DNA from: Octopus sinensis
Lineage: Eukaryota
DNA length: 64,000 bases
NCBI RefSeq assembly: GCF_006345805.1
Contig: NC_043002.1
Location: 22,754,001-22,818,000, forward strand
Reading direction: 5' to 3'
In this document: piece after piece, positions 20,201 to 29,200 of the stretch
How positions within the stretch are numbered: position 1 is the first letter of the stretch
Layout of the letters: every line of letters begins with the position of its first letter
Notes under the pieces: model-generated
What the model was told of the DNA's origin: nothing
The model's input: the letters and a program-made list of their open reading frames with translations, nothing else
Databases searched by the model: none
Translations under genes and position numbers: made by a program

Positions 20201-23200
20201 AAACATATCTTTTTTACCTTATCACAGATCTTGCTCCTTCAAGTTGACCTGAGGTTAAACAACAACAACACTAACAACAACTAGAGGGGCTTTCTCCGTC
20301 CGGGTTGCGGATCCGTGGAACAAACTGCCAGACGAGATGGTGAAGATGCCGACGACCGCTTTGTTCAAAGTCTCCCTTGACCTCAAGTGGCCTGAACTCT
20401 TTACATGAACACCACCCTGTACATAACTCCTACATGTCCCCCTACATGGCCTTGCTTTTTGCTTTTTGAACCAAAAAAATTAACTAACTAACTAACTAAC
20501 TACAAACCAACAACCAAAGAAACATTCACCACCCACTGTCACCACAAAAACAACACGACCTCACATTATTATTGTCATCACCATCATTATTTCACATCAC
20601 AACCCTTCCCTGCCAACAACTGTACGACCACTAACGCGAAAACCAGTATCGCCAACAGCAAAAACGTCGCAACTTACTTCACGATATGTGCCATGAGAAA
20701 TTCAAAGACACTTCGGTTAGGTTCCGGTAAGGTTCTCAGTAACATTTGTATAACTTTCGCCTGCCTCTCCGAGGTCTTTACATCTGTAAAAATATATCAA
20801 TCGATTTGATCATTGCATTTACAAAGGAACATATAATTGCTGGCCAAACTGCACCAATGATTCATACACAATATTGGTTTCAAATTTTGGCACAAGGCCA
20901 GCAATTTTGGAGGAGGATATAAGGAGGATAAAAGGCGGCGAGCTGGCAGAAATGTTAGCACAACCGGGCGAAATGCTTAGCGGTATTTCGTCTGCGTTAC
21001 GTTGTGAGTTCAAATTCCGCCGAGGTCGACTTTGCTTTTCATCCTTTCGGGGTCGATAAATTAAGTACCAGTTACGCACTGGAGTCGATGTAATCGACTT
21101 AATACCTATGTCTGTCCTTGTTTGTCCCCTCTGTGTTTAGCCCCTTGTGGGTAATAAAGAAACAGATATAAGTCGATTACATCGAACCCCATTCTCAACT
21201 GGTACTTATTTTAATTTTATCGACATCGAAAGAGATGAAAGGTAAAGTCGACCTCGGCGGTATTTGAGCTGAGAACGTAAAGGGCGAAATGTCACTAAGC
21301 ATTTTGCCGACGTGCTCGTGATTTCGACTGCTCGCCTCTTTAAACATACACAATATTATTTTCTACAATGGACACACGGCCTGAATTTTTGGAGGGGGGG
21401 CGGATTAGTCGATTATATTGACCCCCAGTGTTTGATTGGTACTTATTTCATCGACCCAAAAGGATAAAAAGCAAAGTCGTCTACGGTGGAATTGGAGTAG
21501 GAGAGGAGGAGGAGAAGAGGGAGGAGGAGTAAGCGGGGAAGAGGAGGAGGAGGAGAAAGAATAATGAGGAGGAGTAAGAGGAGAGGGGAGGAGGAGGAGG
21601 AGGAGGAGGAGGAGAGGAGGAGGAGGAGGAGGAGGAAGAGGGAAGGAATGGAAGGAAGGGAAGGAAGGGAAGGAAGGGAAGAGGAGGAGGAGGGGGAGGG
21701 GGAGGAAGAAGAGAGGGGGAGGAGTAAGAGGAGGGGGAGAAGGAGGGAGAGGAGGGGAAGAGGAGGGGAAGAGGAGGGGAAGAGGAGGAGGAGGAGGAGA
21801 AGAGGGAGGAGGAGGAAGAGGAGGGGAGGAGAAGGAGGGAGAGGAGGAGAAGGAGAAAGAAGAGTGAGGAGGAGTAAGAGGAGGAGGAGAGGGAGCAGCA
21901 GCAGCAGCAAAATTTGAAGGATTGGAGGTGAAGTGAGTAAATACAGAAATCAGTATAGTAACTTACCATCAGAGCTTACATAGAATTTCGAATTGTCTAG
22001 AAGCGGGTGTGCTAGAGACAAGAGAAAGTTGACAAGCAGATTGGTTACATCATGTACAGAATATTTTTTATCCTTGATGGAAAGCGCCCCAGTAAAACTG
22101 CCTGATTGAATATAGAAAGAAAAACACATAAAAATGGCTACATCATACCCACTTAGCATTTAGAAAGAAAGAAAAAAAACAGAAAACACTCGGTTAATGC
22201 ATCTCAAATATCTCCATCTTCTTCCCCTATATCGCCACCTCCAAAGATCTGCTATCCCTTCTTCCTCCATTCTTCCGAACCATGATGCTTGAGTGGGGTG
22301 GAATTGCCCTTAAGCAACCTTCAAACCCTGACTCCTCTGTTGCCACGATCCCTTCAACAGGTATCCTTGACCGCTCTTCATTATTCCATCTGCCCTTCAT
22401 GTGCCACACTACCAGCCCTTGTATTGGTCTCAAATTCTGGTGCAATTCCAGCATTTGGGGGGGGGGGGGAACGCAAGTCGATTACATCAACACCAGTACT
22501 CAACTGGTACTTATTTTTTCGATCCCGAAATGATGAAAGGCTAGATCAACCTCGACGAAATTTGGACTCAGAATGTCGAGACGGACGAAATACCGCTTAG
22601 CATTTCGCCCGGCGTGCTAACGTTTCTGCCAGCTCACCGCCTTACATCCCATCTCTCTTATCACCCTTTGACTGGTCCTCTAACACTACTTATACTCCTT
22701 ACCACTTCATATTTCCTTTACCGTAGCCACTCGTACATAAGGTGTGGGAAGTATTTATCTCCCATTCAACCGATCACACGGCGGCTATCACACATTAACT
22801 CTCACTTATTCCCAGATATTACTCTTCCCTTTTCCCCCACATATACTCCCTTCTATCTTATCTTTCCTTCACTTTACCCACCCATGACGCGGCACTCTTC
22901 TTTCTACCTACTCAATCTTCCCAACCTCCTACTACCCACAACTCTCTGCCTTTACCCTGTTGACACTATGATTTGCCCTCCTGTTACCTGAATAGAAATT
23001 TGGCCTTTTCCTTCTCGGACGATACGATGCGTTCGATTGATGTTCCTCTGTTAAAGTCATAAATGATTATTTCTAGCATCTACACAAGGTCACAAGAGTT
23101 TTAAGGACGGGACACAGTTGGGTAGAATTCTGCTTTAAGCACTCCATATAATGCCTTAGAACTTTTGTTAATTTTTGGAATTTTCAGAAAAAAATTTGCG

Positions 23201-26200: not shown

Positions 26201-29200
26201 AAATGAAAAGCACTGATTTAGTTACAACGTTTCATATCCAAGACACCTGATGTAAACAACAATGAGAATGAAGATGAAAAATGGGTAATGGGCATATATG
26301 CCCTGTTTCAGGAGTTTTTACTCCTTCATCAGTACCCATCCAACCCATTAATCATCCACGAACACATTGCTTAAATAGCCACTAAATATAGCAATATAGT
26401 GTTACTGGATATATTAGTTTTACATATTAAACACATTCCTGGAAGCTGGTACATAAATATTAATGATCTGTAAGGACATGGTATTTCGTTATGCAACTAT
26501 AATATGCTACAAAGTATATTAAACGTTTTTATAATATGCTTTGTAGTCATCGTGGCACTCCATCGGTTGCAACGAGGAGGGTTCCAGTTGATCCGATCAA
26601 CGGAACAGCCTGCTCGTGAAATTAATGTGCAAGTGGCTGAGTACTCCACAAACACGTGTACCCTTAAGGTAGTTCTCGGCTGGTCCTTTAAAATAAAGAT
26701 ACAACAGAAACAGGAAGAAAGCCGTGGTGAAAGAGTATAGCAGGGTTCGCCATCCCACCCCCTGCCGGATTCTCGTGGAGCTTTAGGTGTTTTTGCTCAA
26801 TAAACACTCACAACGCTCGATCTAGGAATCGAAACCGCGATCCTACGACCACGAGTCTGCTACCCTATCCGCTGGGTCACTGCGCCTCCACTTTGTAGTA
26901 TATCATGGTCGCATAACGAAATACGGTGTTCCTACAAGTGACTTATCGAAACTGTTCTTAACATATTATGAACATTATCCAATGGGTCCTTTTTGATGAG
27001 AAAAGGACGTGATATGAAACGTGAGGATAAATTGACATGATATGACGTAATATCGAGAACTGCGCTGTGGGGAGATATGATGCTGTATATAATGTGATGT
27101 GATATCGATTGCTGTGATATGGTGAGATGTAATTCAGTGTAGAGTGAAGTGATACAGCTTCATGTTGTTAGATACGATATGGTATTATGAGATATATCAA
27201 AAACTGATATGTTAAGATGTGTTGTGCTGTGTAAAGAAATGTGATATCGTTTACTTTAATGTGATTGCATGTGATGTGGCGAAATATCATGTGACAACCA
27301 GTGGTGTAAGGAAATTAGATGTGATGTAGGGAGAGTGGCAGGTGATAATAATTGCTATAAAATGATGTTACATAATATGGCCTAATATTGTGCAATATCG
27401 AGTTCTATCATGCGATGAGATATGATGAGATGTAATGTGAACTGATATCGTGTGTTCTGATGTGATATGATACCGTATGTTCCGATGTGATGATTCGTGA
27501 CGTGGGAATAATTTGATATCGAAGGTGTATGGCCTAGGAGTTAGGATGCTGCACTGACGATCGAGCAGTGCTTTGTGTTCTTGAATGAGACCCTTCATGT
27601 GACATCGCTTCAGTCAATTCAGCTGTGAATGAGTAATCCTGCGATAAACTGATATTCTTCCGTTCAGGGCTAATGTTGATATCGCGGTCACTCACACGCC
27701 ATGGAAACGGAGAAACCGGCTCCAATGACACGAGTGACCAGTGTCCAGGGGTTGAAGATGATAATGATGATGAAGAAAAGCATGATGATGAAGTTGATGG
27801 TGATGATGAAGAAAATGATGATGAATAAGATAAAGATGATGATGGTGATGGTGATGATGATGATTATGATGATGGTGATGATGATGATGATGATGATGAT
27901 GATGATGGATGACGACGACGACGACGATGACGATGATGATGATGATGATGATGATGATGATGATGATGAAGGTGATGGAGAAGAGGATGATGAAGAGGAA
28001 GATGAAGATGACGACGACAATGACGATGATATAATGTGATATGACGTTGAATGTTTTTTTTTGTCGTGTAACATGAGAATCTCGAATACTTATGATGAAG
28101 TAAAAACGTGCTGCGCTCTAATGTCATGTGATATCGGGTGATATGAAATGGTGAGGTGAGGTGTGATGCAGAGTGAAGTGCTGAAAACTTGAACAGATTC
28201 TGGAAGTGTGATAAGGTAATGAGGCAAAGAACATCTTTCTCAAGTCTACAACGCTATGTGTCCTACCTCTTTCTTCTATAAATTGAACACAACTTTCGAT
28301 AATTAGAGGAACGTCTCTCTTTTCACGTCTGCAAATATCAAGGATATCAAGATAAGTATAGAGGTACCACGAAGATTATGCATGGATATATACATACATG
28401 CATACATATATATGTATACACAAACACACACACATGTGCACACATTATTATATATACATACATACATATATATATATGTATATATGTATATAAATATATA
28501 TTGTATTATAGATATATATAAATATATATAAATATATGATTATATATATATATAAATATATATATATATATAAATATATATATATATATATATATATATA
28601 TATATATATATATATATATATATGAAAGAAACAAAATAGAATGAAAAATCTACAGAAGATTTGTATTATATGGTTAAAAATATATTAAAATCGTCATTTT
28701 AGGAGAATGATATAAGATTTTATGTATAGTAACATTGTTCCATTTTTTGTTTCTCATACATCCAACCACGTGCCAACTCTCTCACCCGATATATATATAT
28801 ATATATATATATATATATATGTATGTATGTATGTATGTATGTATGTATGTATGTATGTATGTATGTATATGTGTTTGTGTGCGTACGTGCGTGTGTGTGT
28901 TTATGAATTTGTTTTGCAAGATTCTTGATGTGAAATCGTGTGTTGAAACAGATATTGTTATATTTTGGGATGGTCATTTTTTTTCCTTGCCAAATAAACA
29001 CATGCACTATATATTCATTCTTCACTCATTATTGTTGCTCTTATTTTATCATATGTCCATTGTCTAGAAATATTTGGTCACACATCTGTGACCTCTTCAA
29101 CGACGCTTTCCTCCACGTCTTATGCTTCTATTCTGTTTAGTCCATTCTCTTATGTCCACCATGGACATAAGATAAAATAAGCATAATAATAAATAAGTGA

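Follow-up and report, generated by a model that had tools for sequence, protein, structure and literature searches.

A BCR/ABR-like octopus gene whose RhoGAP-like domain has lost the arginine finger and probably canonical GAP activity

What becomes of a RhoGAP domain that has lost its arginine finger, and is the gene that carries it still maintained? These questions are raised by a locus of Octopus sinensis that lies in the window analyzed here, a stretch of 64,000 nt (contig NC_043002.1, positions 22,754,001 to 22,818,000) of AT-rich, repeat-rich animal DNA. The first-pass annotation had assigned positions 21967-28328 of the window to a copy of BCR/ABR with a dead GTPase-activating protein (GAP) domain. 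We found this span to consist of exons 18-20 of a minus-strand ABR-like gene, with canonical AG/GT boundaries. Judging mainly from the sequence, we suggest, with a probability of roughly 0.7, that these exons belong to a functional octopus-lineage BCR/ABR paralogue with a RhoGAP-like domain that would lack canonical GAP activity, would probably bind Rho poorly and is kept by selection.

The ABR-like gene has 22 coding exons in the window (Table 1), running from 63992 down to 17144, and they form a single open frame of 786 codons with one terminal stop and AG/GT at each junction. The translation from MKNLDK on is identical to RefSeq XP_036359603.1, the [quoted passage not shown] of O. sinensis. 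Spliced together, exons 18-20 match Pfam RhoGAP (E=1e-14); the 12-residue finger-loop peptide is encoded at 25306-25341 and the 12-residue equivalent of the LKLYFRELPEP helix at 22004-22039, both on the minus strand. Exons were mapped by tblastn with protein P0001 and then with the O. sinensis and O. vulgaris models P0156, P0165 (isoform X1) and P0157; the last exons were located by Pfam on pseudo-proteins and then via the O. bimaculoides orthologue. P0001 (A0A0L8GCV6 of Octopus bimaculoides, 84% identical, with the NCBI cluster name "breakpoint cluster region protein") was the one close relative found by a HMMER search of 1.84 billion representative proteins. A word-indexed protein search with the 91-residue peptide of spliced exons 18-20 gave no match, and a regular expression for NKM...NLA..F.P had no match in the window because the motif is degenerate in this gene. 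Over the longest aligned blocks, identity between the window and the O. vulgaris assembly is 91-99%; the O. vulgaris locus has a first coding exon of 43 residues (starting METEEE) about 4.6 kb past the window end. The gene is incomplete in the window, with at least one further 5' coding exon outside, and therefore the 26 exons counted in the first-pass annotation cannot be confirmed here (22 in the window, at least one beyond), while the open frame that it described is present.

The residues on which GAP function depends were compared through HMMER alignments to p190, ARHGAP12 and ARHGAP15, which agree with MAFFT alignments to the limpet and krill ABRs; positions are given in p50RhoGAP numbering. 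In the HMMER alignments to solved RhoGAPs, the Leu of IYLTNG falls under the Arg of GIYRVSG, so that the arginine finger (R282/R85) is Leu in the octopus protein, and the V and L of the exon 20 helix fall under the K and R of LKMFFRELPEP, so that the partner lysine K319 is Val and R323 is Leu. MAFFT places the same residues in the same columns, in agreement with the losses of the finger Arg and of the helix Lys and Arg proposed in the first-pass annotation. Toward the end of the domain, N391 is replaced by Ser and P398 by Tyr. Pfam PF00620 matches the full domain at residues 593-737 (E=1.3e-28) with 100 bits, compared with 140-166 bits for two canonical RhoGAPs. A different exon supplying a GIYR motif was not found: a family hidden Markov model (HMM) run over all six-frame open reading frames (ORFs) of the window matched the finger region only at 25222-25341, and the regular expression [ILVMF][YF]R.[SNAGTPCD]G gave no plausible alternative finger exon on either strand of the window.

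R282 and K319 form a conserved basic pair in p50RhoGAP, and R323, N391, V394 and P398 are determinants of Rho binding (PMC8305018). Human RhoGAPs without the arginine are listed as catalytically inactive, and the GAP activity of p85, which lacks most of the binding determinants, is undetectable (PMC8305018). We suggest that stimulation of GTP hydrolysis by the canonical mechanism is very probably beyond the octopus GAP-like domain and that its canonical binding to Rho is probably poor.

The relationship of the protein to BCR/ABR, as claimed in the first-pass annotation, is supported by the domain order, the match to the BCR PH domain, the colinear alignment with ABR and the RefSeq name. The order is RhoGEF, split PH, C2 and RhoGAP. 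Pfam RhoGEF (PF00621) matches residues 51-218 (E=1.5e-9, 38.7 bits, cutoff 27.6), starting in exon 1, where the protein and the O. vulgaris model P0157 are 100% identical, and the DH region gives weak matches in the PDB to the DH domains of Trio and Vav. The generic Pfam PH models stay below cutoff; among PDB structures, this region matches no PH domain but that of BCR (5oc7), weakly (E=0.016) and over both halves of the split PH. The score with Pfam C2 is 17.6 bits, under its cutoff of 22; the motif DSFGGYFNK is aligned by MAFFT with DSFGHFFMK of ABR, and the AlphaFold model has a TM score of 0.71 to the C2 domain of PKC-epsilon (Foldseek). By MAFFT, the protein is colinear over DH, PH, C2 and GAP with the ABR of Patella vulgata and with a homologue from krill. 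The AlphaFold model is good in DH and GAP and shows secondary structure in the same domain order, with strands, helices and then strands plus a helix in the PH region; in the GAP region the pLDDT is 75-93, and the TM score to solved RhoGAP domains is 0.80-0.85 (Foldseek). Upstream of the window the O. vulgaris model adds only 43 residues, which is more ABR-like, as BCR has an N-terminal coiled coil and a kinase region that are absent in ABR. The protein ends in ...RTSFY, the O. bimaculoides orthologue in ...SSFC, and the Patella ABR isoform used for comparison in ...RSAQC; BCR and ABR end in the class I PDZ ligand STEV/STDV. The octopus protein is, on these sequence features, of BCR/ABR-type architecture and highly diverged. 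Two other proteins considered as BCR/ABR members on account of their length, P0047 and P0130, were rejected, as Pfam identifies them as LIM-RhoGAP and SH3-WW-PH-RhoGAP.

The DH domain is strongly diverged too: a 12-residue stretch of its CR3 differs from PVNRIQRNSLVL of ABR. The octopus protein could accordingly prove to be a double pseudo-enzyme, although the GEF is not called dead here. The sequence ELLDPLH of exon 1 had been considered as a dead DH CR1 motif and was rejected, since Pfam sets CR1 further on (FSVEKASV..., Glu kept).

Selection on the gene was evaluated against two congeners, O. bimaculoides (locus L001; 13 comparable exons, 1430 nt) and O. vulgaris (locus L002; all 22 exons, 2361 nt). 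All 13 exons compared with O. bimaculoides are equal in length and keep AG/GT. They carry 110 substitutions (7.7%), while in the introns that could be aligned mismatch is 10.7% and gap-opens number 9.8 per kb; no exon indel is seen where about 14 would be expected at the intron rate (P about 1e-6, or ~1e-3 at half that rate), and the probability that 110 random substitutions leave no stop codon is 0.011. The dN/dS ratio with this orthologue is below 1, at 0.55 by NG86 (bootstrap 0.37-0.85), 0.71 by maximum likelihood and 0.69-0.72 by the methods other than NG86. By region it is 0.37 at the PH end, 0.49 in C2, 0.32 in the linker and 0.78 in GAP, the last being indistinguishable from 1 at these counts. 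The finger exon (exon 19) has diverged by 12.8%, about as much as the introns and more than any exon except exon 9, as expected of a relaxed former active site. None of the 22 exons is missing from O. vulgaris; together they carry 10 substitutions and no indels (about 14 expected); seven changes are synonymous and three non-synonymous (binomial P against neutrality 0.001). Non-coding sequence of this species differs by 1.57% mismatch and 6.2 gap-opens per kb, and substitutions are fewer in the exons than in non-coding sequence by Fisher's test (P=8e-7). All splice sites are conserved across the three species. Selection clearly acts to keep the gene as a whole, as the first-pass annotation had held, in view of the conserved exon lengths and splice sites, the lack of indels and stops and a dN/dS below 1. 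Constraint is weakest in the GAP-like domain, as expected of a domain that no longer has an enzymatic role and is still needed in frame and folded.

It might be argued instead that the locus is a decaying, non-functional duplicate with a frame that is open by chance. The dN/dS is fairly high (0.55-0.71 overall, 0.78 in GAP), and the published gene models of the locus disagree, both of which would suit a pseudogene. However, neither 1.4 kb nor 2.4 kb of exon sequence has acquired one of the roughly 14 indels expected in each comparison, stops are absent, the splice sites have persisted in three species, synonymous changes prevail over non-synonymous ones against O. vulgaris, and paralogues with the same losses are likewise intact. 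We therefore regard a pseudogene as very improbable and retain the reading of a functional paralogue.

As for the public models, the one presented here corresponds to isoform X1. O. sinensis isoform X2 reads exon 2 (61607-61792) in another frame through an internal acceptor, and the O. vulgaris model, which has extra exons at 59023-58934, 33390-33509 and 12171-12236, leaves out several exons of GAP as well as those of C2. These conflicts may reflect artefacts of annotation or splicing that is truly aberrant.

The first-pass annotation had missed that octopus has at least three tandem Arg-less paralogues. The finger loop reads IYLIPG in the O. bimaculoides orthologue, LYISKG in the paralogues P0007 and P0155 and IYIMRG in P0153; the Arg column thus holds L, I, I and I in these proteins, and none has Arg. 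A stretch of about 170 kb on chromosome CM046606.1 of O. bimaculoides contains three Arg-less genes. The window gene is thus no lone aberrant copy but one of an octopod-specific tandem family. Argonauta hians yielded a fragment (P0006) that does not cover the finger; it is most like the window gene (39-42% identity) and has the tail in common with it, and its sequence for this reason suggests that the clade is older than the Argonauta-Octopus split. No squid or nautilus homologues surfaced in an alignment-based protein search, which also missed known paralogues. A wider scenario, to which we would give slightly less than an even chance, is that the octopod clade is old, tandemly duplicated, fast-evolving and derived from BCR/ABR, that GAP catalysis was lost in its common ancestor while DH diverged strongly, and that its members are lineage-specific pseudo-enzymes of the Rho pathway kept since before the Argonauta-Octopus split, possibly with new cytoskeletal or neuronal roles.

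Two side observations concern relatives of the gene. At the O. bimaculoides locus, the first GAP exon is present twice, at 29609-29683 and 30062-30136, ~450 bp apart, and RefSeq XP_052824455.1 translates both copies and so duplicates 21 residues; the doubling is due either to an artefact of the assembly or to a recent duplication of the exon. The parasitoid wasps Venturia canescens and Leptopilina heterotoma have proteins with multiple RhoGAP repeats (P0002, P0004) that rank among the best matches to the GAP domain outside octopus; the Venturia protein has three RhoGAP repeats, and the finger arginine is absent from all of them.

Several points weigh against the interpretation of a maintained paralogue without canonical GAP activity. 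The overall quality of the AlphaFold model is only moderate (mean pLDDT 66.7, pTM 0.35). The dN/dS of the GAP domain is not separable from 1, so that the constraint on this domain is indicated mainly by the absence of indels and stops. A canonical octopus ABR with an intact finger was not found by the alignment-based protein search, which returned four proteins. In the HMMER alignments, the active ARHGAP12 and ARHGAP15 have Ser at the N391 site and p190 lacks R323. Because of these exceptions, the finger and the partner Lys are the decisive losses, and the change of Asn to Ser, which had been considered as another, was downgraded. Some GAP families also function without an arginine finger.

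That last point would favor a domain that is still an active GAP, which uses a non-canonical residue (the Asn or Lys in IYLTNGNK) or receives an arginine from an alternative exon or a partner protein; the paralogue P0153, with an Arg two residues downstream in IYIMRG, could be taken in the same sense. However, the window holds no alternative finger exon, the loop differs between close orthologues (LTNGNKEH versus LIPGNESH), and the partner Lys has been lost as well, so that retained activity is hardly to be expected.

The first-pass annotation had favored a scaffold or dominant-negative role of the OCRL kind, in which the GAP-like domain would still bind GTP-loaded Rac/Cdc42 without hydrolysis, as an effector-like binder or a competitor. 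This proposal agrees with the retained RhoGAP fold and with the purifying selection on the gene, and OCRL1 does bind Rac1-GTP without catalysis (PMC8305018). However, beyond the finger, the equivalents of K319, R323, N391 and P398 are all changed, three of these (R323, N391 and P398) being binding determinants of the kind that p85 mostly lacks (PMC8305018), and the finger loop and the GAP domain have evolved almost neutrally. Because binding determinants have been lost besides the finger, we consider an OCRL-like binder rather unlikely and favor a structural or repurposed module like the p85 BH domain. The first-pass annotation was right about the motifs, the family and the maintenance of the gene, and the catalytic inactivity that it proposed is strongly suggested by the sequence.

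According to the interpretation that we prefer, the RhoGAP fold has been kept while the catalytic Arg, the partner Lys and several residues that hold the GTPase in canonical RhoGAPs have disappeared. From the gene structure, domain order, residue losses, fold, conservation and selection described above, we infer a loss of activity, weak Rho binding and a scaffold role: the GAP-like domain may serve as a structural or regulatory module or as one for new partners, similar to the p85 BH domain, and any activity directed at Rho would come from the diverged DH-PH module together with membrane targeting mediated by C2.

Table 1. Coding exons of the ABR-like gene in the window
Feature	Coordinates	Strand	Content and remarks
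Exon 1 in window	63798..63992	-	residues 1-65, pre-DH and DH start; phase 0, AG/GT
Exon 2	61607..61792	-	DH domain; family HMM E=7e-20
Exon 3	60179..60289	-	DH domain; acceptor upstream of that of isoform X2; identical to isoform X1 (P0165)
Exon 4	59112..59142	-	31 nt, DH domain
Exon 5	57415..57467	-	DH CR3-like helix; family HMM
Exon 6	55304..55414	-	DH end; family HMM
Exon 7	53426..53547	-	first PH strands; aligned to BCR PH, PDB 5oc7
Exon 8	51606..51673	-	PH
Exon 9	48820..48926	-	helical insert within split PH
Exon 10	47182..47235	-	54 nt, in frame; PH insert
Exon 11	43531..43672	-	last PH strands and C-terminal helix
Exon 12	41096..41142	-	PH-C2 linker
Exon 13	40718..40748	-	linker
Exon 14	39621..39695	-	C2 start
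Exon 15	37742..37953	-	C2 core, aligned to ABR CLEMDSFGHFFMK; family HMM E=3e-33
Exon 16	34938..35003	-	C2
Exon 17	32737..32882	-	C2 end and linker to GAP
Exon 18	28267..28328	-	first GAP helix; upper boundary of the span first annotated
Exon 19	25263..25340	-	78 nt, in frame; former finger loop, Leu at arginine-finger site
Exon 20	21967..22101	-	helix, K to V and R to L; lower boundary of the span first annotated
Exon 21	20678..20783	-	GAP
Exon 22	17144..17366	-	GAP end (N to S, P to Y), tail, stop codon

The introns around the finger exon contain repeats. Inverted copies of an interspersed repeat of ~380 nt, at 24020-24397 and 26555-26892 and 89-91% complementary, flank exon 19, and at least one further copy is represented at 12807-12829(-). 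Inverted repeats that flank a single exon are a classic setting for exon skipping or for back-splicing into circular RNA. The intron between exons 18 and 19 also holds a long imperfect microsatellite of the (GAT)n type (27724-28049), which would be Asp-rich or His-rich if translated. In the last intron, antisense to the gene, lies a broken remnant of a Tc1/mariner-type transposase with an ORF split by stops (17539-18519, +; Pfam HTH_Tnp_Tc3_2 E=1.6e-4, DDE_3 E=1.3e-6). A convergent neighbor gene, at about 1-9240 (+), ends about 8 kb downstream of the ABR-like gene; its counterpart in O. vulgaris has an 870-residue product with a weak C2 match. A further paralogue at this position, to which a faint tblastn match of its last exon to the last GAP exon of the family (E=0.04) had pointed, was not supported by the family HMM, and Pfam found nothing in that last exon. 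At about 1265-2500 (-) lies a long Lys/Glu-rich open frame (about 310 residues), which has no Pfam match and may be the ORF of a repeat element. ARAGORN called no tRNA genes in the window.

To our knowledge, BCR and ABR are the sole proteins that unite a Rho GEF and a Rho GAP in a single chain. A conserved BCR/ABR architecture without the GAP machinery would represent a natural separation-of-function experiment on the scaffold role. Nothing relevant to octopus and "breakpoint cluster region" turned up in a search of the literature. The octopus gene would be an invertebrate, lineage-specific addition to the short list of RhoGAP pseudo-enzymes, and for the annotation of cephalopod genomes it implies that an automated "ABR-like" name should not be read as "Rac GAP".

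Compared with BCR/ABR, which are GAPs for Rac/Cdc42, the octopus protein has the same domain order, is colinear over about 700 residues and has in common a PH domain split by a helical insert and the C2 motif DSFG.F..K. The closest BCR/ABR sequences found are that of Patella vulgata ABR (XP_050407938.1) and the krill homologue, to which it is 22-24% identical, whereas the limpet and krill proteins are 37% identical to each other. It differs from BCR/ABR in the loss of the arginine finger, of the partner Lys and of the residues equivalent to R323, N391 and P398 and in a tail that ends in SFY instead of STEV/STDV, and its gene is one of at least three clustered tandem paralogues in octopus that lack the Arg.

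The human RhoGAP-like proteins without an arginine finger are OCRL1, INPP5B, ARHGAP36, DEPDC1A/B, FAM13B, ARAP2 (CNTD1) and the BH domains of p85alpha/beta, and this list of Arg-less RhoGAPs includes no natural GAP-dead BCR/ABR member (PMC8305018). As in the octopus protein, the RhoGAP fold is kept in these pseudo-GAPs and the catalytic Arg is absent. The resemblance is closer to the p85 BH domain than to OCRL, since p85 BH has also lost several Rho-binding determinants and residues that surround the finger. In contrast to the listed pseudo-GAPs, the octopus domain, known from its sequence and a structural model, has an independent, lineage-specific origin from a BCR/ABR ancestor and adjoins DH-PH-C2, a context that is absent among them. 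The octopus gene is most likely an octopus-specific addition to the known class of inactive pseudo-GAPs.

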